Below are positions 6,536-64,000 of a stretch of 64,000 nt of DNA, piece after piece. The DNA lies in the IMG/VR virus record IMGVR_UViG_3300037086_000360, positions 186,112 to 250,111 of that record, one strand, 5' to 3'. The translations under genes and the position numbers were made by a program. How positions within the stretch are numbered: the stretch's first letter is position 1; the number at the start of each line of letters is the position of its first letter. Below the pieces are notes generated by a model that ran no database searches, had not been told where the DNA came from, and was given only the letters and a program-made list of their open reading frames with translations.

Positions 6536-6898
6536 ATGGCAGATGAAGTCAAACAGGTGATTGTGGTAAATATGGCCGTTCCATTTCCTCTCGGAAGATT
6601 GATGGCTCAAATTGCTCATGCTTCCATGCTCAACATCGTTAATCGTGGAACTTGGAATGGAGACAAGTTTTCCATTGATGCGGACGATTTGGCCCTAAGA
6701 TTTTGGCTTAAGGATCATTATACAAAAGTCGTATGCAAGGCTTGGGGCAAGGAGCAGATGATGAAGATCAAAGCTGAAGCTGAGAAAAGAAAACTTTACG
6801 TTGCGCTAATGGAGGAAGAGGGGTTTATTACAGCACTCGCTATTGGTCCTGCGGATGTGAAAGATCTTTCTTTCACTGACACTTTAGCATTGGTATGA
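6536..6898 (+). CDS. Divergent Pth2-like protein
   Basis: KQVIVV...GRLMAQIAHAS...YTKVVCK...TALAIGP fits the Pth2 fold; GK is replaced by GR and DAGxT by EEEG. Confidence 0.8.
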   Translation: MADEVKQVIVVNMAVPFPLGRLMAQIAHASMLNIVNRGTWNGDKFSIDADDLALRFWLKDHYTKVVCKAWGKEQMMKIKAEAEKRKLYVALMEEEGFITALAIGPADVKDLSFTDTLALV

Positions 6899-6926: not shown

Positions 6927-6999
6927 CTCGCTGTAGCTCGAATCTTGGTAGAGCACCCGGTCAGCCGGGAGGTTGGAGGTCCGAATCCTTCTGGCGAGG
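6927..6999 (+). ncRNA. tRNA-like RNA without an anticodon (4-nt loop TCAG)
   Basis: Acceptor CTCGCTG/TGGCGAG, D arm GCTC/GAGC, T arm GGAGG-TCCGAAT-CCTTC; anticodon arm is CCCGG-TCAG-CCGGG. Confidence 0.78.
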
Positions 7000-7006
7000 T
7001 TTTCTT

Positions 7007-7082
7007 TCCGCTGTAGCTCGAATTTGGCAGAGCGTCTAGTCGAAAGATTAGAAGGTTGGAGGTTCAAGTCCTTCCGGCGGAG
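7007..7082 (+). ncRNA. tRNA-like RNA without an anticodon (GAAA tetraloop)
   Basis: Acceptor TCCGCTG/CGGCGGA, D and T arms nearly identical to 6927..6999; anticodon arm is TCTAGTC-GAAA-GATTAGA. Confidence 0.78.
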
Positions 7083-7105: not shown

Positions 7106-7177
7106 CTCTTCGTAGCTCAACGGTAGAGCAAGAATCCCTAAAATTCTAGGTCGCGGGCTCGACACCCGCCGGAGAGG
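7106..7177 (+). tRNA. tRNA with CTA anticodon (amber suppressor-like), atypical C33 and T loop
   Basis: CTCTTCG/CGGAGAG acceptor, G73; AGAAT-CCCTAAA-ATTCT places CTA at 7138-7140; T loop CTCGACA. Confidence 0.72.
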
Positions 7178-7181
7178 CCTT

Positions 7182-7255
7182 GGTCCTGTAGCTCAGATGG
7201 TCAGAGCAACGGATTCTAACCCCGTCGGTCGAGGGTTCGAGCCCCTCCAGGATCT
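7182..7255 (+). tRNA. tRNA with CTA anticodon (amber suppressor-like)
   Basis: GGTCCTG/CAGGATC acceptor; ACGGA-TTCTAAC-CCCGT places CTA at 7216-7218 (A31.C39 mismatch); canonical T loop. Confidence 0.72.
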
Positions 7256-7756
7256 CTAGATAGTTGGATCGTGAAGTTTTTTGATTGCGTATGAGAATGC
7301 GCTATAAAAGTCTTTTGAAGAAACCCACTTATTCCTTAGAATTACCCTTTCACTTTCTTCATCGAAGAAAACACGGATCAAATCTTTAGCATTTTTCAAC
7401 ATCCATTTATCATATCTATGAATTCGTTTTGCCAAGTATGTGTAAGCAATGTCGAACATTAGTTCATAATCTTTTTCAGTTTGTACTGGTGGTAAATCTT
7501 TTTTGACTCTATATGGTCTGAGATTTCTCCACTTACTCGTTGCACTTGGCCAATTTGTTTCAGCAGAATAGCCTCTAATCACACCCTGCGCAAATACCGT
7601 GATTTTGTCATCAGCTACATCAGGATTGCCACTGAAGTCAATGTTTCCATGACTGAGTTGGGCTGGAGTGGTAGTATCTCGCCAACCAAGAGAAATGATA
7701 TCTTTATACGATGGCAACTGTTTGATTTTTTCATGGTCAAAATTGAAATGTTTCAT
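7256..7756 (-). CDS. Hypothetical protein (start MKHFNF)
   Basis: Lone minus-strand gene; a GTAAGATA motif lies just upstream on the minus strand. Confidence 0.65.
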   Translation of the reverse strand: MKHFNFDHEKIKQLPSYKDIISLGWRDTTTPAQLSHGNIDFSGNPDVADDKITVFAQGVIRGYSAETNWPSATSKWRNLRPYRVKKDLPPVQTEKDYELMFDIAYTYLAKRIHRYDKWMLKNAKDLIRVFFDEESERVILRNKWVSSKDFYSAFSYAIKKLHDPTI

Positions 7757-10761: not shown

Positions 10762-12594
10762 ATGAATCAACCAACTCCCAAAGCTCCCAACATGCGTAAA
10801 AATATCGCTATTGTGGCCATACTGCTAATAGGCTATTTTGTTTTTCAGTTTTTTATTGGAGGTGGAACTACTCCAGAAATCAGCTATAGTACTTTTAAAA
10901 AGGCCCTAATTGACGGTAGGATCCAACAAGTTTCTGTTTCAACTACTGAGATCCGTGGAGTAATGAAAGATAAAGAAATTGAGAAGCAGTTTTCAACCAT
11001 TCGCGTAGATGATCCAGAATTGACGAAATTACTCGAATCCAAAAATGTTCAATACTCTGGAAAAATCCAGAGCAACTTCTTATCCAATCTTTTATGGATC
11101 ATAATTCCTTTTGCTCTTCTATATTTCTTTTTCATGCGACAAACTGGTGGAGCGGGCACTAATGTTCTCTCATTTGGAAAGAGTAGGGCGAAACTCAACC
11201 AACCTCTGATTGGAAAAAAGATCTCATTTAAAGATGTCGCTGGAGTTGATGAGGCGAAAGAAGAGCTTCAAGAGGTTGTAGATTTTCTGAAGACTCCCCA
11301 GCGCTTTCAGCAATTGGGTGGAAGAATCCCTCGTGGAATCCTTTTAATTGGAGCTCCTGGCACCGGCAAGACACTTCTTGCAAGGGCGGTCGCCGGAGAG
11401 GCTGGGGTTCCATTTTTCAGTATTTCTGGATCTGAGTTTGTTGAAATGTTTGTAGGAGTTGGAGCTGCGAGAGTAAGAGATCTCTTCGCTCAAGCGATGT
11501 CAAAAGCCCCTTGTATCGTTTTTATCGACGAACTTGATGCCCTGGGAAGAGCTCGAGGATTTTCTCCAGTTGGTGGATTTGATGAGAGAGAGCAAACTCT
11601 CAACCAACTCCTTACAGAGATGGATGGTTTTGATACTCGAGTTGGCATCATCATCATGGCTGCTACGAACAGACCGGAGATTCTTGACTCAGCTCTCATG
11701 AGACCTGGAAGATTTGACCGACAGGTTCTTGTTGATAGGCCAGATCTTGTTGGTCGAGAAGCCATTCTCAAGGTTCATTCAGAAGGGATCAAGATGGCTG
11801 AGAACGTTGATCTCAAAACCATTGCTCAGAGAACTCCAGGATTTGTCGGAGCAGATCTCGCCAACATCATGAATGAGGCAGCCCTTCTTGCTGCAAGACG
11901 CAACAAGACTGAAGTTATGATGGATGAGTTTAGTGAGGCTATCGATCGTGTTGTTGCTGGTCTAGAAAAGAAAAAAAGGCTGATCAGTCCATCAGAGAAG
12001 AAAATTGTGGCTTATCACGAGGCTGGTCATGCCATTGTTTCCCATTTCTCTGGAAAGGGTGATGAAGTCCATAAGATTTCCATTATTCCTCGTGGAATTG
12101 CTGCTCTTGGCTACACAATCAATCTTCCTACAGAAGATCGTTACTTGATGACTCAGAAAGAGCTTGAAGCAAGGCTCGCTACTCTTCTTGGTGGAAGAGT
12201 CGCGGAAGAGCTCTTCATTCAGGACGTTTCCACTGGAGCCTCAAGTGACCTGATGAAGGCAACAGAGATTGCGAAAGCTATGGTCAAAGAATATGGAATG
12301 AGCTCTCTTGGACTTTCTTCTTATGAGAGACCATCAAATCCATTTCTCAAAGATAATTCTTTCTTCCCTTCTGAAAAAGATTATTCAGAAAAAGTAGCGG
12401 CACAAATTGATGAAGAAGTTAAAAACATGCTCATTAAAGCACACGATAAAGCTGTGGTTATCCTTAACACCAAGAAACAGCTTATGGAAGACTTGTCGAA
12501 ACTTCTTCTTGAAAAAGAAGTCGTAGAGAAAGATGAGTTTATAAAACTCATGACAGAAGAGAAGCTGGAAGAATTGCCGCGCGCAGAAGCATAG
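10762..12594 (+). CDS. ftsH: ATP-dependent zinc metalloprotease FtsH
   Basis: Two TM segments, Walker A GAPGTGKT, Walker [37 protein letters not shown]. Confidence 0.98.
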
Positions 12595-16698: not shown

Positions 16699-17117
16699 TG
16701 CGACGATGGCTTACAGCATGGACACCTGAGTTAGCAAGAAAAGAAATGATAGCCAGGGAGCTTAGAAGAACTAGGCCCCTGGTTTCTTTTCCGCTTCTCA
16801 AAAAAGTGTACGACAAATTTGGAATCTTTTGGGTGACAATGCACCATGTTGAAGATATGGATGAACATCTCTGGAGTAAAATGCATGATCTAAATAGACA
16901 TGGACTCTTAGAGCTTTCTGAGTGGAAAAAAGAAATCAATCCAACTCCCTCAAGAGGTCAAAAACTTGCAAACTATTGGAGAGTAACTCCACTTGGTTTG
17001 ATAGCCCTTACAAAATTTTATAGTGTCAAAGATGAAGACGTACACAAAGTTAGCAAATATTTGTTGGACCCAGAAGGAGATAAGAATGAGGCGACTGTCT
17101 TGGCAAAACGATATTGA
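16698..17117 (+). CDS. Hypothetical protein
   Basis: Coupled to the HNH stop. Confidence 0.55.
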   Translation: MRRWLTAWTPELARKEMIARELRRTRPLVSFPLLKKVYDKFGIFWVTMHHVEDMDEHLWSKMHDLNRHGLLELSEWKKEINPTPSRGQKLANYWRVTPLGLIALTKFYSVKDEDVHKVSKYLLDPEGDKNEATVLAKRY

Positions 17118-17697
17118 ACCCGAGATTCCAGACAGAAAATTACCGATAAACAACAATAAAAAAGATGATGATCAACAATTGGTCGAACACATTGATGGTC
17201 ACATTTACTTTTATTCAGATGTGACTTCCCTATCAGTAATTAAACTCAACAAAGTAATAAGAGAAATCACAAACAATATGCTTCCATATAAAGAAGATGG
17301 ATTGGTGTTGAAGCTTCATATCAACAGTGATGGTGGAGTTCTTCTTGATGGACTTGCCGCTCTCGATTCAATTATTTCTAATGCACTTCCCATCCATACC
17401 TATGTAGAAGGTGGAGCTGCCTCAGCCGCCACTCTTATTTCAGTCGCAGGTAAAAAAAGATTCATGCACAGACACTCTTTCATGCTTATCCACCAAATGT
17501 CAAGCAGACTGTGGGGCAAGTATGAGGAGATAAAAGACGACAAAGAAAACTGTGATCGATTCATGAAAATGATCAAGGATATTTACAAGGAATATACAAA
17601 AGTTCCTATGAAAAAGATAGATGAAATTCTCAAACATGATTTGTGGTTTGACGCAGATCAATGTCTTGAATATGGGATGATAGATGAGATAGTCTAG
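17086..17697 (+). CDS. ClpP-like serine protease
   Basis: INSDGG, GGAASAATLI (catalytic Ser), MLIHQ (His), DLWFDADQCLEYGMIDEI. Confidence 0.9.
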   Translation: MRRLSWQNDIEPEIPDRKLPINNNKKDDDQQLVEHIDGHIYFYSDVTSLSVIKLNKVIREITNNMLPYKEDGLVLKLHINSDGGVLLDGLAALDSIISNALPIHTYVEGGAASAATLISVAGKKRFMHRHSFMLIHQMSSRLWGKYEEIKDDKENCDRFMKMIKDIYKEYTKVPMKKIDEILKHDLWFDADQCLEYGMIDEIV

Positions 17698-22657: not shown

Positions 22658-23500
22658 ATGGGAATAATTCGCACACACTGCGCACTCATCCTCGATAAAA
22701 GCGGGTCGATGGGCGGTATCAAGGATTCTGCTCTCAACAATTTTAACGAGCAGATCCAGACTCTAAAAACAGAGTCAAATTCACCAGATGCCATTGCCAA
22801 GAAGATGTTGATAAGTGGTGGAAATCCAACGGGAGTTGAGACATATGTCACTCTCGTAGCATTCAACGACAATGTCGAATTTTTGAACTTTGATCAGAAC
22901 ATTAATGACATTGAAGAGTTTCCAGCTGAAAAATACGCACCAAACGGCTCAACAGCACTCTTTGATGCCATTGGAATGACGATTGACCGTTTTACCAGCG
23001 AGATCCAAGGACTTGATGATCCAGATACTGGAATGTTGTTCATCATTATCACTGATGGACAGGAAAATGCCTCTAAGTCCTGGGGACAGGAAGATGGAAG
23101 AAAGAAGCTGAAGTCAAGAATAGAAGAGCTTCAAAACTCAAAGAAATGGACTTTCACATTCATTGGTTCTGAAAAGGTCATGGAGACCGCCGTTGATCAT
23201 CTGGGTCTCTATGCTGGAAACACCGCTTCCTTTGCAGCTACCGCTGGTGGGATCAGGGGCGCTTCAGTTCAAATGTCTGCTGGAACTAGAAGCTACATGT
23301 CAGCAAGAATGCTACATAAGACCTCTATAGATTCATATTACAGTGGCGATGATGACGCTACTGGTCCTACAGTTGTTCCACCAGTTGATCCTCTCACCGG
23401 AATTGACGTAGCAAAGATCAAGTTGATGGAAGAAGCCATCAAAAAGAGTGCACTGAAGAAACAAACAACAGTTTCCGAAGAAGATAAAGAAGAAGCATAA
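22658..23500 (+). CDS. vWA-domain protein
   Basis: LILDKSGSM (DxSxS), GSTALFDAIG, IITDGQEN. Confidence 0.92.
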   Translation: MGIIRTHCALILDKSGSMGGIKDSALNNFNEQIQTLKTESNSPDAIAKKMLISGGNPTGVETYVTLVAFNDNVEFLNFDQNINDIEEFPAEKYAPNGSTALFDAIGMTIDRFTSEIQGLDDPDTGMLFIIITDGQENASKSWGQEDGRKKLKSRIEELQNSKKWTFTFIGSEKVMETAVDHLGLYAGNTASFAATAGGIRGASVQMSAGTRSYMSARMLHKTSIDSYYSGDDDATGPTVVPPVDPLTGIDVAKIKLMEEAIKKSALKKQTTVSEEDKEEA

Positions 23501-23693: not shown

Positions 23694-23968
23694 GGGGCCG
23701 TAAAGGTTTCGACTGAACAGTGTTGGGCTTAGCCGAAGTTTTTCTACAAAATAGACGCGAATAACTTCGCTCTCGCGGCATAGCCGCTCACCTAACGGCA
23801 TTTAGTTTTTTGCTTCTAGCTGTTGGGTAACAAAAAGCAAAGAACGGGTTCATTCAATGAAACTCCCGTAAAAAAGCGAATTGTGGTATTTAGAATCCAC
23901 CACTCTACGGTTCTACGGCAGGCGAAGGTCCTTTGTTCAGGACGGGATTTCGATTATCCCCGGCTCCA
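23694..23968 (+). ncRNA. ssrA: tmRNA, 275 nt, tag (A)ANNFALAA*
   Basis: GGGGCCG...TTCGAC 5' end; GGGAT-TTCGATT-ATCCC-CGGCTCC-A 3' end with G3.U70; AAAATAGAC upstream of GCG AAT AAC TTC GCT CTC GCG GCA TAG (23757-23783). Confidence 0.92.
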
Positions 23969-23977
23969 TTTCCAGAC

Positions 23978-27688: not shown

Positions 27689-28576
27689 ATGAAGAGTTTG
27701 AAGCAACTGAATGAGAAGCTTCTTCAAAAGAGAGTCCTTTTGGAAGATGGTGATGCTCCTCCTAAGATTATTCAAGAGCTCTTGTTCAAAATCTCTTATG
27801 TAAATCCATTTATTTCAAATCTTCTCAGTAGTTCCCATACTGATTGGTATGAAGAACCTGGTATAGAAACTGCTGGAGTCACTGTCAGATTTGGCAAGAT
27901 CCATTTCTTCTACAATCCTGAATTTATAGCTTCACTGTCTGAACCAGAACTCGTTTTTTTGTTGTTGCATGAACTCTATCACATTTTTAAGCAACACACC
28001 ATCAGAGGAAAAATGGCTGGTGGTGATCCAGAAAAGGCCCACTTATTCAATGTTGCAGCCGACGCGATCATCAACGATGAAGTTGAAAAAGATGGTGGTC
28101 CAGGTGGAAGACCAATAAAAGTAATTGATCACGCTTGGTTCATCAAACCTCGTGGTACTTCTGGACAATATGGAAGTGTAGAAAAAGAATTTCAAAACGA
28201 TCCAAAAGATGACTATAAGGGACAGGAACTTACTGAAGAACTTTACAAATGGATGTTGGATCGAAAGAAAAACTATGCACCACCTCCACCTAAGCCTGGT
28301 AGTGGAAAGGGCAATCCTTATGTTCCAAAAGTTGGTGATGTGGTTTGGAACGAAAAAACTCAAGAATATGGAAAAGTATCTTCAATCGCTGGCAAGAAGA
28401 TTTCTGTAGAGACCATGACAGAAAAAGAAGCTGAAGCCGCATTGAAGGCCAAACAAGGAACGCAAACTTCTAGTCCTGTTGGACAAACAACTTCATTTTC
28501 TCAAAATCCTGCTCAACTGAGCCATCTTGAACAAGAAATGGCCAAAATGCAGCAATCAAAAGCTGGAAAGAAATAA
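27689..28576 (+). CDS. DUF2201 N-terminal metallopeptidase-like protein (system 1)
   Basis: TAGV...FFYNPEF...LLHELYH (HExxH)...NVAADAIIN; C-terminal KOW/SH3-like PKVGDVVW. Confidence 0.85.
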   Translation: MKSLKQLNEKLLQKRVLLEDGDAPPKIIQELLFKISYVNPFISNLLSSSHTDWYEEPGIETAGVTVRFGKIHFFYNPEFIASLSEPELVFLLLHELYHIFKQHTIRGKMAGGDPEKAHLFNVAADAIINDEVEKDGGPGGRPIKVIDHAWFIKPRGTSGQYGSVEKEFQNDPKDDYKGQELTEELYKWMLDRKKNYAPPPPKPGSGKGNPYVPKVGDVVWNEKTQEYGKVSSIAGKKISVETMTEKEAEAALKAKQGTQTSSPVGQTTSFSQNPAQLSHLEQEMAKMQQSKAGKK

Positions 28577-28577
28577 T

Positions 28578-30101
28578 ATGGGCCTAGAGTTTTTAGACCG
28601 TCTTTCAAAAGAAATTGTCGAACAAGTAAAGACAGCAACCTGGGATCAGCCCGATGTTCTTCCTGTTGGACTACCCCCACCATCTGGCGGTCAGCCTGGA
28701 AAACCAGGCGGTCAAAAAGGAAAAATAATAGGCAAGCAACCACCCCCTCCTCCAGGTGGAAAACCAGGACAACCTCAACCATCACAACCGCCTCAACCAG
28801 GTGGAAAACCACCAAAGGGCGGAGAACCTCAGGGTTCTCCATCTCCAGGAGATAAAAAGGGCGGAGAACTTACTAAGGGCAAAGATGCTATTGGAGATTT
28901 TGAGAATAAGGGAAAAGAAGGCAAGAAACCAGTTGCTGGAAAAGAGGGTGAGAGCACGAAGGGAAAAGAGAAGATGGAAACTGGTGAGGGAGAAGATGAG
29001 GGGAATAAAAAAGACTCTGATAAAAACAATGGAAAAGAGTGGATGGATGATCATTCCAAGTTGGCAGACAGTGATGGAAGTGCTAAGGGTTTGATTGAGA
29101 GAGCTTATAGAGAAGTCGAAGCAGATATGAAGAAAATAGAGGCTCGTTCTACTATGGCTGGAAAAGAATCTGGTGGTTTTTTTGCTCGTCTGAAAGAGTT
29201 CATGAAAGAAGAGTTTGACATCTCTCAAATCTTAGATAGACTTAGAGAGTATAAGATCGAAATCAACAAGCATATCAAAAAGAGAGAAACCTATCAAGCT
29301 GGAGTTTTTAATCCAGTAACTCATAGTGGAAGCATTCTCGCTCCAGGATCTCCTAAGCTCCCTATTTATGAGAAAAATGCTGCTATTTTGATTTTTGCTC
29401 TTGACACATCAGGATCTATCACCGCTGAAGATTGGTCTTCAGCACTTGGATATATGAACAGCATCGCTCGCCAATTTGAAGAACAAGAACATGGAATCAA
29501 GGGCAAAGTCTATTACATAAACTGGGACACTGAAGTCCATCCACCAATCAGAAAGTGGAACTATATGACTGAGTTGAAGCCTAAAAAAGAAATGACACCA
29601 GAAGAAAGAGAACAAATGGCAGTCATGGGAATGGGTGGAACCGACATTCAGTCTCTCTTTGATTTCCTTGATGAACACTTTGTCAGAGTGGTTGATGGAA
29701 AGCCATATTTCGTTTGGTCCGAGAAGATGGCACCGTTCATTTCAGATCCAAAAGAAAGATCGAAGGCGGCCAAAGAAAAAACTCTTCCGGACGATTCAGT
29801 TCAAGTAGAAATCGAACCACCAGATCCAAAGAACTATAAATATCGTGTTGGTGAGTATAAGAAGGAAATGTCGGATAAGGCAAAGCAGGGAAAACTTCAA
29901 TTGGATGTTGGCGGAGTTCAACCGGTTCCATATCTTCTTATCTATACTGATGGTTTCTTTGGAAAACCAGATGTAGCAAAAAGCAAACTCTTCGGCAGAG
30001 AGCCTGGAAACATTCTCTATATCATTACAAGCAGGGCTGGAATCGCCAACATCAATCCACCAAACTACGTGTATCACAACCTCCATAACGATAAACTCTA
30101 G
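28578..30101 (+). CDS. vWA-like protein with Pro/Gly/Lys-rich N-terminus (system 1)
   Basis: ALDTSGS, GMGGT, IYTDG; PPPPGGKPGQPQP low-complexity tract. Confidence 0.82.
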   Translation: MGLEFLDRLSKEIVEQVKTATWDQPDVLPVGLPPPSGGQPGKPGGQKGKIIGKQPPPPPGGKPGQPQPSQPPQPGGKPPKGGEPQGSPSPGDKKGGELTKGKDAIGDFENKGKEGKKPVAGKEGESTKGKEKMETGEGEDEGNKKDSDKNNGKEWMDDHSKLADSDGSAKGLIERAYREVEADMKKIEARSTMAGKESGGFFARLKEFMKEEFDISQILDRLREYKIEINKHIKKRETYQAGVFNPVTHSGSILAPGSPKLPIYEKNAAILIFALDTSGSITAEDWSSALGYMNSIARQFEEQEHGIKGKVYYINWDTEVHPPIRKWNYMTELKPKKEMTPEEREQMAVMGMGGTDIQSLFDFLDEHFVRVVDGKPYFVWSEKMAPFISDPKERSKAAKEKTLPDDSVQVEIEPPDPKNYKYRVGEYKKEMSDKAKQGKLQLDVGGVQPVPYLLIYTDGFFGKPDVAKSKLFGREPGNILYIITSRAGIANINPPNYVYHNLHNDKL

Positions 30102-31599: not shown

Positions 31600-33312
31600 A
31601 AATGGAACCCGATAAAAAGGCAAAAATACTTCTGGAATACGGAAGTATGATTGTATATCTCAGAGAAAAACTCATTGATGTTGGAATCGACGATTCAGAA
31701 GTTGAAGAACGCCTTACGACTTCTTTCTTTGATTTCATAGAACCAGAACAGGTGAGAGAGTCATACGATTCTGAAGAGCTTTCAGGTGATCCAGAAGAAG
31801 CCACCTATGAAACATGGCATGATGCCTGGGAAGATAACAGTGATCCTCTTTGTCATAGACTTGCTGAAGAATACTCTCTAATGGTTTTCGACAGTGATGG
31901 AGACATGGAAGATGAATTAGTAAAATACATCATGAAGGTGGCTGTTGGTATTTCTGTGGATGGTGGTCCAAATGAATGAAGATAACTCTACAAGACCTCA
32001 TCAATCACGCAAAATCCTCTGACATAAAATGGCTCTATGAGATCAAGACTGTAAGTTGGCTCAAGGGGCTTCTCAACAATAAACTTGACGAAGTCACAAT
32101 CAGATTTCTTTGGAACAGAAATGACATTCATTGGGACATCGTCAGATACCAAAAGATTCCTTCTGACATGGTAAAAGATTTATTTGAAGATTATATGGGC
32201 ATGAGAAAGAAGAAGGGTGTCAATGCTGCCACTTTCAAACAAGCTATAGTCAGTCAAAATATAACTCCAGAGATTGTCAAGCTGACCGAAGACGTCAATA
32301 ATTTTCCCAATGAAGCCTACTTCATGTTATGGAGTACTATTCCTGAAAAAATGGTTAAGATGGCCGACATCACAACTTTCATCAATAACATCAGTGATGT
32401 CACATATAAGGATTTTGGTTTCTATGTAAAGGAATCTCTCATAGCTCTTGTGAGAGAAGTTCCAGAGACCATGGTCACTGTGATGGAAAAGGTACTGGTT
32501 TCGAAAGATTTGTGTGAAGAAATCATTCCAACTCTTGGTAAGTTAGTGTTCTTCGATGATGAGACTATAGAACTCATTCGTCAAACAGTTGGAGTCATGA
32601 CGTTTTATACATTCATGGAGCATCTCATTAGCAGAGACCATTGTTCTGTGAGTGCAAAAGCAAAATATCTTCTGAGTAAATAGATGAGTGTATTGAAAGT
32701 TATTGGTGAAGCATTGGAAAATAGATGGTTTGAAGTTCCTGAAAAAGATGGAATAGTATATGTTCGTCTTTCTGTAATCAACGACTATCTTGGAAGAGAA
32801 AAAATCACCTATTTCAGTGTTGCGTTTGATAAAGATCATAAGTTGTTTATGCCTCTGTTTTATAGAGGTCATGATTTTGAATACTTCGCACAATTCAACG
32901 AAGTAGAAGATCAAGAGTTAGTTGTACAATTCACAGCCTTTGAAGCCAAATATTTACTTGGAGGAAAAGAATGACCACCGCTTTGGATCTAATATATGAA
33001 GCATTAAAAGACAAGTGGTTTGCTTCTAGGGCAGTTGATTTCTATTATGACATCTATCATGATCCAAAAAAAACTAAGATCTACCAAAGAGTTGAAATGG
33101 ATTCAGACAAGAGTCTTCGATGGGTCTTTATCGTTGTAAATAAAACTGGACTAAACTCAGAAGTCTCGTCTTCATATGAAGATTTTACTTCTGATGAAAC
33201 AGCCGATAAGCTTAGAGAAGTGAAAGATGACAGAATGATTAGAAAGCTTACAGCAATAGAAGCTCTTTATGCACTGAGTGAAGAAGATGAAGACGATGAT
33301 GACTGCGTGTAG
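31596..33312 (+). other. Run of four coupled hypothetical genes; 32684 and 32971 are paralogs
   Basis: Overlapping start/stop codons; shared EAL..(R/K)WF and TA.EA.Y.L motifs. Confidence 0.55.
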
Positions 33313-35331: not shown

Positions 35332-37143
35332 ATGGCAGTCACCAAAGAACAAATCAAAGAAAACGCCAAGAAGATGATTTCAGTCATCGACAAGCTGACT
35401 AAGGTCAAGAGGGTCCGTCTCCCGGCTCGCGTTGAAGCAGTGTCGGTGAAGTGGGTTCGTGATGCTCCTTTCTTCTCGGAGTTCTTGATGAGGTTCAACT
35501 ACTTTGAGACTGAAGCAATTCCTACAATGGGAGTTAATTGCGTCAAGGGACGTATCAACCTCTATATCAACACTACGTTTATGAATGGTGGTGGTGAGTT
35601 CTACAAGTTTGACAAAGAAGGCAAACCCATTCTCAAGATGAAGGGTGGAAAACCACTTCTTGACGATCAGGGAAATGTCATCTACGAGATGGAGCCTTGG
35701 AAGGGTCTCAATGATGACCAGCTTGAGGCAGTTCTTCTTCACGAAATCATGCATCTCATTCGTTGTCACCATGAGAGGACGCTTGAAGACCCTTATGTTT
35801 TCAACGTCGCTGGGGACATGCTTATCAATGACGATTTGAAAACAATGCAGATCGGAAATCGTAAACCAACACTTCCTGACGGCGCCGTCTATCTCGACAT
35901 GGCAAAGAAGGAAGGGTATAAGGATGAGCCCATCACTGAAAAGGTGTATGTGTGGCTCATTGATCAGCGTCAGAAATACATGAATGCAATGCAGGACCTG
36001 ATGAAACAGCAGGGAAAGCAGAGCGGCCAAAAACAGCAGTGTTCTCATTGTGGTGGTTCAGGAAAAGTTGATCAGGAATGCTCTGAGTGCGGTGGAAAGG
36101 GAACTACGAAGCCGAAGTGCCCAACCTGTGGTGGAACTGGCCAGAAGCAACAAAACCAGGGAAATCAGAAGCAGGATGGAAAGGGAAAGGGCAAAGATCA
36201 GAAAGATAAGGGCGACGGAAACCAACAGGGAGAAGGCCAAGGTCAGGGTGATCAGAAACAGGATCAGCAGGGTAGTGGTCAGGGACAGGGAGATCAGGAA
36301 GGTGATGGACAGGGAAGCTCTTGCCCCGACTGCCATGGAACTGGAAAAGACCAGAGCGGACAGGAAGTTCCTTGTCCAAGCTGCGGTGGAGGCGGTCACG
36401 AAGAAGGAAAATGCCCTCACTGTGGCGGAAGCGGCAATCAACGCGGTTCCGACTTGTTTGATGCAATGTACGGTTCCAAGATCGATGACCACTCTTCAAT
36501 GGAACAGAATGATGAACTGACTGAGGCAACTATTAGGGAAATCATCGAAACTGGAAAGATCCGCGGATGGGGCAACATTAGCGGAGAAGCGGTCGAGAAA
36601 CTCGAAGAACTGACAAAACCATCCAAGATCTCTTGGAAGCAGATTCTCCGAAGGTATCTCACTGCGGCCATCCATGACGTTGGAAACATCTACGAAAACT
36701 CTTGGTCCAAGAGAAACAGAAGGCAGCTTCCACTTCCTGGAATCAAGAAGCTCAACAACCGTGTCATCATCGGAATTGATACGTCTGGATCCATTGGTAA
36801 GAAGGAATTTCAGATGTTCTTCACCGAAGTCGAGAGGATTGTCAAAGACACGTCCAACATCATTCTTCTCCAGTGGGATACGGAAATCAAAGATGTGAAA
36901 CTTGGCTACAAGAAGGGCGACTGGAAGAAAATCGCAATCAAGGGCAGAGGAGGCACGGACGTCCAGAAGACTTTCGACTGGATGGTCGAAGAGAAATACA
37001 CCACGTATCCACTCATCATGTTTACGGACGGTTATTTTGACCACAACTTCGACACTCGTGCTGTCAAGGTCGTATGGTGTGTCACCCAGAGCGAGAATAA
37101 GATCCCCGGGGGAGACAATATCTACATCGACATAGATGAATAG
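35332..37143 (+). CDS. DUF2201 metallopeptidase-vWA protein with inserted CxxCxGxG zinc-finger repeats (system 2)
   Basis: LLHEIMH, NVAGDMLIN, six CxxCxGxG repeats, IDTSGS, GRGGT, MFTDG. Confidence 0.9.
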   Translation: MAVTKEQIKENAKKMISVIDKLTKVKRVRLPARVEAVSVKWVRDAPFFSEFLMRFNYFETEAIPTMGVNCVKGRINLYINTTFMNGGGEFYKFDKEGKPILKMKGGKPLLDDQGNVIYEMEPWKGLNDDQLEAVLLHEIMHLIRCHHERTLEDPYVFNVAGDMLINDDLKTMQIGNRKPTLPDGAVYLDMAKKEGYKDEPITEKVYVWLIDQRQKYMNAMQDLMKQQGKQSGQKQQCSHCGGSGKVDQECSECGGKGTTKPKCPTCGGTGQKQQNQGNQKQDGKGKGKDQKDKGDGNQQGEGQGQGDQKQDQQGSGQGQGDQEGDGQGSSCPDCHGTGKDQSGQEVPCPSCGGGGHEEGKCPHCGGSGNQRGSDLFDAMYGSKIDDHSSMEQNDELTEATIREIIETGKIRGWGNISGEAVEKLEELTKPSKISWKQILRRYLTAAIHDVGNIYENSWSKRNRRQLPLPGIKKLNNRVIIGIDTSGSIGKKEFQMFFTEVERIVKDTSNIILLQWDTEIKDVKLGYKKGDWKKIAIKGRGGTDVQKTFDWMVEEKYTTYPLIMFTDGYFDHNFDTRAVKVVWCVTQSENKIPGGDNIYIDIDE

Positions 37144-49491: not shown

Positions 49492-50172
49492 ATGAATAGG
49501 TACTCAGCCTCCAAAATAAAAACGTTTGAGACATGTAGACTGCAATTCAAACTACACTATATTGAAAACATCGAAGTAGAAAAACCAGTCTCACCAGACA
49601 CAGAATTTGGTTCTCTCATCCACAAAGCAGCAGAGATTTATAATGGATCCAATCTCACTGAAGTGGTAAAGCTTACAAGAGATTACCATCTCAATGAAGC
49701 ATACAAGAGAGAAATAGCCCACACATTAAGAAATCTTTTTGTGTTCAGTCAGAAATACAAACACGTCGATGAAAAAAGAGAGCTTGAAATTGAATGGAAA
49801 ACGGATGACATTTGGTTATATGGCTTTGCCGACAAGTTGATCGATAATAACCAACTCATTTGCATTGACTACAAAACAGCAAAATACGCCGACACTTCAA
49901 GATTCATGTTCCAAATGAGACTCTATAATCTCATCCTCTCTCACGTCTATCAAAAAGATCCCGACAAAATCAGATTTGTTGTCTATTTTCCAAGAATAGA
50001 TACTGAAGAGAAGATTCTTTTTTCAAAGAAGGAAATCATTCTCTTTGAGAGTGACATAAGGAAAAAGATCACTACAATAGAATCTAACACCGATTGGAAC
50101 CCAGCTCCTGGATACCATTGTAGATGGTGTCAATACTGTAAAGGCACCAATTGTGATGTTGGAAAGTGTTAG
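49492..50172 (+). CDS. PD-(D/E)XK nuclease (RecB/Cas4-like)
   Basis: SASKIKTFETC...GFADKL...IDYKT...QMRLY...CRWCQYC...C. Confidence 0.88.
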   Translation: MNRYSASKIKTFETCRLQFKLHYIENIEVEKPVSPDTEFGSLIHKAAEIYNGSNLTEVVKLTRDYHLNEAYKREIAHTLRNLFVFSQKYKHVDEKRELEIEWKTDDIWLYGFADKLIDNNQLICIDYKTAKYADTSRFMFQMRLYNLILSHVYQKDPDKIRFVVYFPRIDTEEKILFSKKEIILFESDIRKKITTIESNTDWNPAPGYHCRWCQYCKGTNCDVGKC

Positions 50173-63900: not shown

Positions 63901-64000
63901 TTGTAAAGATATAGTATGGACCTAATTTTTGGCAAATGGTTGAGAAATGAATCTTGGGAGCATGAAGAAGAGTATAATGATTTTCAGAGAGTCTATTTGA

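Follow-up and report, generated by a model that had tools for sequence, protein, structure and literature searches.

Why should a phage that ends genes at TAG carry, side by side, two tRNAs whose anticodons read UAG? The question is raised by a pair of genes in a 64 kb stretch of DNA (hereafter the window), which forms positions 186,112–250,111, the final 64 kb, of the viral contig IMGVR_UViG_3300037086_000360 (JGI Ga0334812_000008; 250,111 bp) from a peat metagenome. Positions are those of the window unless the contig is named. We consider it somewhat probable that the pair are working amber suppressors, which would bring about partial, untargeted read-through of UAG in a phage that is not recoded. 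The evidence for this reading, and for the alternatives to it, is set out below.

Results

Source and extent of the sequence

An independently made Logan assembly of the same run gave the identical sequence, and identical stretches of the phage recur across many peat DNA and metatranscriptome runs. No close relative was detected among GenBank phages, either by megablast with 25 kb or by tblastn with a 1112-aa protein. Because the early genes of known recoded phages use the standard code, the reading was extended leftward along the contig beyond the window; the stretch assembled and read was contig 82,264–250,111 (167,848 bp, 67% of the contig), with a GC content of 40.5%. A search for a terminal repeat in the contig found none. 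The JGI and Logan assemblies end at most one base apart at window position 64000, inside an ORF starting at about 63917; a repeat, variation between strains at this site or a true physical end could each account for this.

Two adjacent genes encode CUA tRNAs with different bodies

Of the six RNA genes that ARAGORN, the check that the initial annotation had suggested, called in the window, two are adjacent and have the anticodon cta (7106-7179 and 7182-7256). When the window was searched with the Rfam tRNA model RF00005 (gathering score 29 bits), both were matched at full length on the plus strand, at 7106–7177 (54.2 bits, E 7e-9) and 7182–7255 (61.1 bits, E 9e-11). These predicted amber-suppressor tRNAs are referred to hereafter as Sup-1 and Sup-2, respectively. 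The Rfam alignment places CUA at positions 34–36 of a 7-nt anticodon loop in both (7138–7140 in Sup-1, 7216–7218 in Sup-2). The agreement of the two methods confirms that both genes are true CUA tRNAs.

Divided into its arms, Sup-1 reads CUCUUCG-UA-GCUC-AACGGUA-GAGC-A-AGAAU-CCCUAAA-AUUCU-AGGUC-GCGGG-CUCGACA-CCCGC-CGGAGAG-G and Sup-2 reads GGUCCUG-UA-GCUC-AGAUGGUCA-GAGC-A-ACGGA-UUCUAAC-CCCGU-CGGUC-GAGGG-UUCGAGC-CCCUC-CAGGAUC-U. Sup-1 has a C1-G72 pair, the loop CCCUAAA with C33, the T loop CUCGACA with C54, and the discriminator G73 at 7177. Sup-2 has G1-C72, G2.U71, the loop UUCUAAC, an A31.C39 mismatch, and the discriminator U73 at 7255. The initial annotation had listed the two discriminators, C33, the CUCGACA T loop and the A31.C39 mismatch, all correctly, as the alignment shows. 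Encoded CCA is absent from both genes. They are 68% identical, which does not exceed their identity to unrelated tRNAs of the same genome, so that the earlier description of two unrelated CUA tRNAs with different bodies is borne out.

ARAGORN reports the pair as 'Pyl', its label for any CUA tRNA. tRNA-Pyl has a 3-nt variable loop, a short D loop without G18G19, a 6-bp anticodon stem and a single base between the acceptor and D stems, and is accompanied by pylS and pylBCD genes. Sup-1 and Sup-2 both have U8A9, GG in the D loop, a 5-bp anticodon stem, a 5-nt variable loop and a T arm of normal length; with such ordinary arm and loop lengths, they are not tRNA-Pyl.

A promoter and terminator scan revealed nothing exceeding shuffled expectation, and an HDV-like or theta ribozyme beside the tRNAs had no Rfam match even at E<=1. 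Peat metatranscriptome contigs that do cover neighbouring genes gave no clear coverage of Sup-1 or Sup-2.

Both tRNAs have relatives in other viruses

A pattern of the Sup-1 D arm and loop, with Y permitted at position 33, returned relatives of Sup-1 from 19 further viral contigs, of which many measure 160–580 kb. In the resulting alignment 97.7% of the cells are paired, and 16 of the 21 pairs show compensatory change. The loop is CUCUAAA in all 19 others, a constancy that is not independent since the anticodon loop was set by the search pattern; C33 and C54 occur in Sup-1 only. Given these two bases, which depart from near-universal residues and which no other class member has, Sup-1 may be weak or inactive. 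Two loci, L143 and L148, also have two CUA tRNAs each, in tandem or nearby.

A distant relative, L123, was obtained by a metagenome search with the protein encoded upstream of the tRNA cluster, the peptidyl-tRNA hydrolase PTH2 (6536–6898, plus strand; Pfam PF01981, E 1.5e-15). Its PTH2 is 63% identical, and 50 nt downstream lies a CUA tRNA that matches Sup-2 in the loop UUCUAAC, in U73 and in the 31.39 mismatch. A pattern derived from Sup-2 and the L123 tRNA recovered six more viral contigs, giving seven other loci. The alignment of this class, comprising six distinct sequences, has 93.7% of its cells paired and two-sided change in 11 of 21 pairs, and its score was matched by none of 500 shuffles. 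The loop UUCUAAC is invariant, the D arm and loop being dictated by the search pattern in this class as in the other, and 31.39 is unpaired in all six aligned members. Such constancy makes the mismatch a trait of the family and not a defect.

The CUA register is identical in every member of both classes, while the discriminators vary between U73, A73 and G73. These alignments place each tRNA in its own class of CUA tRNAs from viruses, with compensatory changes preserving the fold.

Fragments from two further runs were also found. In run X5, a peat contig carries the 3' 58 nt of a Sup-2-like tRNA (corresponding to window 7198–7255, with 3 differences) followed by unrelated sequence, and in run X4 a PTH2 fragment has 30 differences across 214 aligned bases (∼86% identity). 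There are, then, relatives in which the genes are ordered differently.

Non-canonical tRNAs and tRNA-like genes in the cluster

The surroundings of the pair bring in a different explanation, in which neither tRNA has a role in suppression and both are uncharged or poorly decoding tRNA-shaped RNAs (nuclease decoys or substitutes) or decaying copies. Two tRNA-like genes lie directly upstream on the plus strand, and an RNA-run contig covers 6952–7068. The first, tRNA-like A (6927–7001), was recognized by its fold and by direct reading of the sequence; it was not called by ARAGORN and had no Rfam match even at E<=1. It is cloverleaf-like but lacks an anticodon, since a UCAG tetraloop caps the 5-bp stem of the anticodon arm. 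Its paralogue, tRNA-like B (7007–7082), was called by ARAGORN and matches the Rfam tRNA model (40.9 bits) in an alignment that leaves out its anticodon loop. B folds with a 7-bp stem and a GAAA tetraloop (z = -2.3); on this predicted fold it probably lacks an anticodon as well, the 4-base 'gaaa' reported by ARAGORN being a probable misreading. The presence of these genes, C33 and C54 in Sup-1, and the widely non-canonical tRNAs of the phage are all in line with RNAs that do not suppress, and it has been suggested that phage tRNAs escape the anticodon nucleases of the host by way of altered anticodon loops (PMC10264068).

The C33 of Sup-1 proved to be part of a wider pattern. Among the 47 tRNA genes in contig 82,264–250,111, 11 have C33 where U33 is nearly universal, including Lys-UUU, Lys-CUU, Phe, Asn, two Met, two Val-GAC and Leu-GAG tRNAs in addition to Sup-1, and these often adjoin a U33 isodecoder. 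By comparison, C33 was seen in 0 of 182 cellular tRNAs and in 5 of 95 other viral tRNAs. As a habit of the whole genome, C33 does not mark Sup-1 as a pseudogene. Moreover, U33 is reportedly dispensable for amber suppression in a yeast tRNA, a result attributed to Bare et al. in 1983. Nuclease evasion was considered as an explanation of C33 and dropped, since a published study reports U33C to be without effect on gamma-toxin cleavage. Independently of the suppressor question, the many C33 tRNAs of this phage offer a lead on non-canonical anticodon loops. The caveats that the initial annotation had attached to the pair are largely settled for the A31.C39 mismatch and for C33; the C54 T loop is still unusual.

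Further evidence against a non-suppressing pair comes from the classes themselves. Across the divergent Sup-2 class, CUA and the entire loop are invariant while the stems co-vary, and the loop of the Sup-1 class, fixed as it is by the search pattern, is that of strong laboratory amber suppressors. Nor would a decoy require an anticodon that reads a stop codon. We therefore regard the absence of any suppressor role as unlikely.

Amino-acid identity

The acceptor stems and discriminators (G73 and U73) fit no assignable synthetase identity set. The phage's own tRNAs are at best 62–71% identical to Sup-1 and Sup-2. Glutamine identity by way of the phage tRNA-Gln was considered and rejected; its three genes have U1-A72 and A73, and no similarity to either suppressor.

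The loop CUCUAAA is also the anticodon loop of supF, and a single base separates it from CUCCAAA, the loop of tRNA-Trp, including the phage's own tRNA-Trp. The Sup-2 arm resembles the arms of tRNA-Gln or tRNA-Glu. Its sequence ACGGA-UUCUAAC-CCCGU, together with the D arm, is close to that of an alphaproteobacterial tRNA-Arg(UCU), ACGGA-UUUCUAC-UCCGU (L152 and other cellular loci), and the cellular tRNAs that share the D arm and anticodon stem of Sup-2 are mostly tRNA-Arg(UCU), along with tRNA-Val(UAC). It is tempting to speculate that the CUA of Sup-2 arose from UCU plus A37 through a one-base slip of the loop. An arginine assignment was not made since Sup-2 is without A20 and C35, the arginine determinants.

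TAG is an ordinary stop codon in the stretch read

Contig 82,264–250,111 contains 323 ORFs (about 90% coding), which end in nearly equal numbers at TAA (117), TGA (104) and TAG (102). The ORFs of at least 100 aa (n = 192) end at TAA in 73 cases, TGA in 48 and TAG in 71, and the 104 greedy ORFs of the window alone in 44, 31 and 29, respectively. Code-11 ORFs cover 0.84–1.0 of each 5-kb bin from 130 kb onward. TAG accounts for 32% of terminators as compared with 24% of all stop triplets, and is thus not avoided. Individual TAG stops noted previously were also found as described: those of FtsH, an AAA+ metalloprotease (10762–12594, plus strand; Pfam M41, AAA, FtsH_ext), of a ClpP-family protease (17023–17697, plus strand; Pfam PF00574, E 1.7e-26) and of two DUF2201/vWA genes (28527–30101 and 35332–37143). 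A weak VWA gene at 22658–23500 ends at TAA.

The first of the DUF2201-like genes is apparently split into overlapping ORFs in different frames (27689–28576 and 28527–30101), covering positions 14–200 and 149–344 of phrog_1314; a frameshift, decay into a pseudogene or an error in sequencing could explain the split. The paralogue at 35332–37143 is intact and lies beside a MoxR-type ATPase.

No convincing in-frame TAG was found in conserved genes within contig 82,264–250,111. There is none in the possible late or lysis genes (ClpP-like and SLT lysozyme-like, both ending at TAG), in a 577-aa protein with a gpD/VgrG-like, hub-like predicted fold, or in a 1112-aa tape-measure- or minor-tail-like protein; the last two assignments are Atlas leads with just a weak PHROG tail match. 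Among the Pfam hits listed for the called genes of contig ∼91–199 and 236–250 kb, there was no aminoacyl-tRNA synthetase, full-length release factor (RF2 included) or Pyl gene; the scan of window 12.7–50.5 kb and of contig 82–91 kb was of selected ORFs. The 167,848 bp read do not look like code 15, having no in-frame TAG, high code-11 density, common TAG and, among the Pfam hits listed, no RF2 or GlnRS. The standard code is thus verified for contig 82,264–250,111, and the earlier statement that the genome is not recoded holds for the window and for this 67% of the contig.

The main rival to our reading concerns the rest. TAG could be a sense codon in late genes within contig 1–82,263, with both tRNAs decoding those genes late in infection. 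In known recoded phages, it is the structural and lysis genes that contain the recoded stops, the early and replication genes follow the standard code, and CUA tRNAs are encoded as well. Moreover, capsid, portal and terminase genes were not recognized within contig 82,264–250,111, which leaves room for recoding confined to contig 1–82,263. Against this stand the undepleted TAG, which ends even the SLT lysozyme-like and ClpP-like genes, the lack of in-frame TAG in the two probable tail genes (577 and 1112 aa), and the absence of an RF2 gene among the Pfam hits listed and the called genes scanned. The closest in-frame TAG junction, at contig 84,885, has AAGGAG and ATG directly after the TAG, a Shine-Dalgarno site and start of its own, and was rejected. 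In known recoded lineages and their relatives, furthermore, the recoded stop turns rare first. Late-gene recoding is in our judgement quite unlikely.

Targeted read-through of particular genes is not supported

The initial annotation had proposed conditional read-through of selected genes. In this form of the suppressor hypothesis, which differs from the untargeted read-through that we favour, the tRNAs make C-terminally extended isoforms of chosen phage proteins. In its favour, the next in-frame stop comes slightly later after TAG (median 15 codons, as compared with 11 and 9 after the other stops; p = 0.049), although the distances broadly resemble those after TAA and TGA. Within the window, extensions past TAG are not longer than those past other stops, and contig 82,264–250,111 shows no enrichment of back-up stops behind TAG.

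A neighbouring ORF lies in frame after 17 of 41 TAG stops and 15 of 44 TAA stops, close to the expectation of about one third, and most in-frame ORFs downstream of TAG have their own Shine-Dalgarno site and ATG. There are a few TAG genes whose in-frame follower has no recognizable Shine-Dalgarno site (31976–32683 followed by 32684–32974; contig 169,064; contig 108,097), as chosen targets might. PHROG searches with the tested pieces, however, revealed no continuity of family across candidate TAGs, and the candidate junction between the exonuclease at 49492–50172 and its in-frame neighbour was rejected for the same reason. In any case, suppressors acting in trans cannot by themselves choose particular TAGs. 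The proposal of selected targets is not upheld, and we consider programmed read-through very unlikely.

The CUA tRNAs lie in a conserved neighbourhood

PTH2 is immediately upstream of the tRNA cluster. At L123 the order is PTH2, the CUA tRNA and then, 56 nt past it, a 111-nt tmRNA-like gene (L123:1389-1499) with tRNA-like ends and a very short middle, which scores 55.5 bits with the Rfam tmRNA model (gathering 47) and is not called by ARAGORN. The peat phage itself encodes a tmRNA with the tag ANNFALAA (23694–23971, plus strand; ARAGORN; Rfam RF00023, 60.6 bits). More distant PTH2 homologues (26–31% identity) occur in Mycobacterium phage Myrna, Xanthomonas XacN1, Agrobacterium Atu_ph07 and Salicola SCTP-2; in XacN1 the gene lies among structural genes, and not beside tRNAs as in the peat phage. 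Among 40 loci with FtsH relatives in viral contigs, none has the tRNA cluster of the peat phage.

Further along the contig, at L010:2490-2867 (contig ∼142,571–142,948), is a 125-aa protein with an RF-1 domain (Pfam E 5e-12). It has the size of an ArfB-type rescue factor, with the motif GNGGM where GGQ is expected, and may be catalytically inactive as judged from its GGM. The ClpP-family protein could be a quality-control or a prohead protease. Altogether, the translation and quality-control set comprises at least 47 tRNAs, the tmRNA, two PTH2 genes, the RF-1-domain protein, FtsH and the ClpP-like protease, as well as ribosomal protein L33 and a lysine-2,3-aminomutase-like radical SAM enzyme. 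This set may be tied to the suppressors.

Other cargo of the phage is also unusual. At contig ∼150.8–156.2 kb (L009:1180-6571) there are a periplasmic-binding protein, two sensor histidine kinases and a response regulator, and elsewhere a ferritin, an NMN transporter, an IMPDH and an AMMECR1 protein.

Discussion

A model for untargeted read-through

In our preferred reading, Sup-1 and Sup-2 would be two genuine suppressor genes kept by selection within the set of at least 47 tRNAs of a ∼250-kb peat jumbo phage. The pair would be co-transcribed with the surrounding tRNA and early-type genes of the same strand, CCA would be added by the host, and a host aminoacyl-tRNA synthetase would charge them; for the inserted residue, glutamine is the precedent among CUA tRNAs. 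Once charged, they would rival release factor 1 for UAG codons, so that on the messages of both host and phage UAG would be read through in part and without targeting, with no reassignment of the codon. Such read-through might be tolerated because the next in-frame stop follows at a median of 15 codons, with rescue and clean-up of the products by the tmRNA, the RF-1-domain protein, the two PTH2 genes, the ClpP-like protease and FtsH. Candidate gains are perturbation of host termination, buffering of nonsense mutations and an ambiguous intermediate on the way to recoding. Against this reading, suppression should be costly when TAG ends one third of the genes, yet back-up stops are not enriched behind TAG.

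A bolder version is that the phage deliberately keeps UAG ambiguous, the two suppressors, of different classes, making one third of the phage's own genes and the TAG genes of the host leaky and the rescue kit absorbing the products. It seems improbable to us. If true, ambiguous UAG would be a living intermediate of code change without prior loss of the codon, or, alternatively, a counter-measure to host factors acting on UAG-paused ribosomes, such as RelE-type toxins. RelE preferentially cleaves UAG in the A site, and tmRNA counters RelE. The conserved order of PTH2, CUA tRNA and mini-tmRNA would then be a functional module.

For the partial, untargeted suppression that we favour, the wider interest lies in the order of events. 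Recoding models have stop-codon loss first and the suppressor second; here there are two conserved suppressors while TAG ends one third of the genes. If contig 1–82,263 also uses the standard code, the phage would be a natural test of the opposite order, with ambiguity first, and would show the limit of viral tolerance for read-through. Both classes are easy to search for, by the CUCUAAA loop in one case and by the UUCUAAC loop with its constant 31.39 mismatch in the other, and these patterns could reveal suppressors that pipelines now mislabel as tRNA-Pyl.

Comparison with known systems

The CUCUAAA loop common to the Sup-1 class is that of supF, which, with Su7, is among the amber suppressors of E. 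coli (tRNA-Tyr CUA and tRNA-Trp CUA, respectively). Unlike these, Sup-1 has CCCUAAA and C54, and the genes are natural ones kept in many viruses rather than host tRNA genes altered by one mutational step. The peat phage shares CUA tRNAs with the code-15 phages (crAss-like, Lak and other huge phages) and is similar to them in genome size and tRNA richness; it differs in that neither in-frame TAG nor a low code-11 density nor RF2 was seen in the 167,848 bp read.

The closest parallels are phages of standard code that carry a stop-reading tRNA. An Agate phage near recoded relatives has a TGA-suppressor tRNA, which has been read as a step preceding recoding (Borges et al., bioRxiv 10.1101/2021.08.26.457843), and the Klebsiella jumbo phage phiKp24 encodes a tRNA-Sup-TTA (PMC8386662). 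Since suppressor tRNAs are already on record in such phages, the phenomenon itself is not new, and as in those cases the tRNAs could be a recoding precursor or a tool of host takeover. The suggestion in the initial annotation of a stage before reassignment matches the published model in this respect. In that model, however, depletion of the targeted stop comes first, and GC is low; in the published precursor case the targeted stop ends 4 of 146 genes (bioRxiv 10.1101/2021.08.26.457843), whereas in the peat phage TAG makes up 32% of terminators, at a GC content of 40%, and so shows no depletion. In contrast to the Agate phage and phiKp24, moreover, the peat phage has two amber suppressors, of different classes and in tandem, and, unlike the earlier standard-code cases, a neighbourhood of PTH2, CUA tRNA and tmRNA that is conserved.
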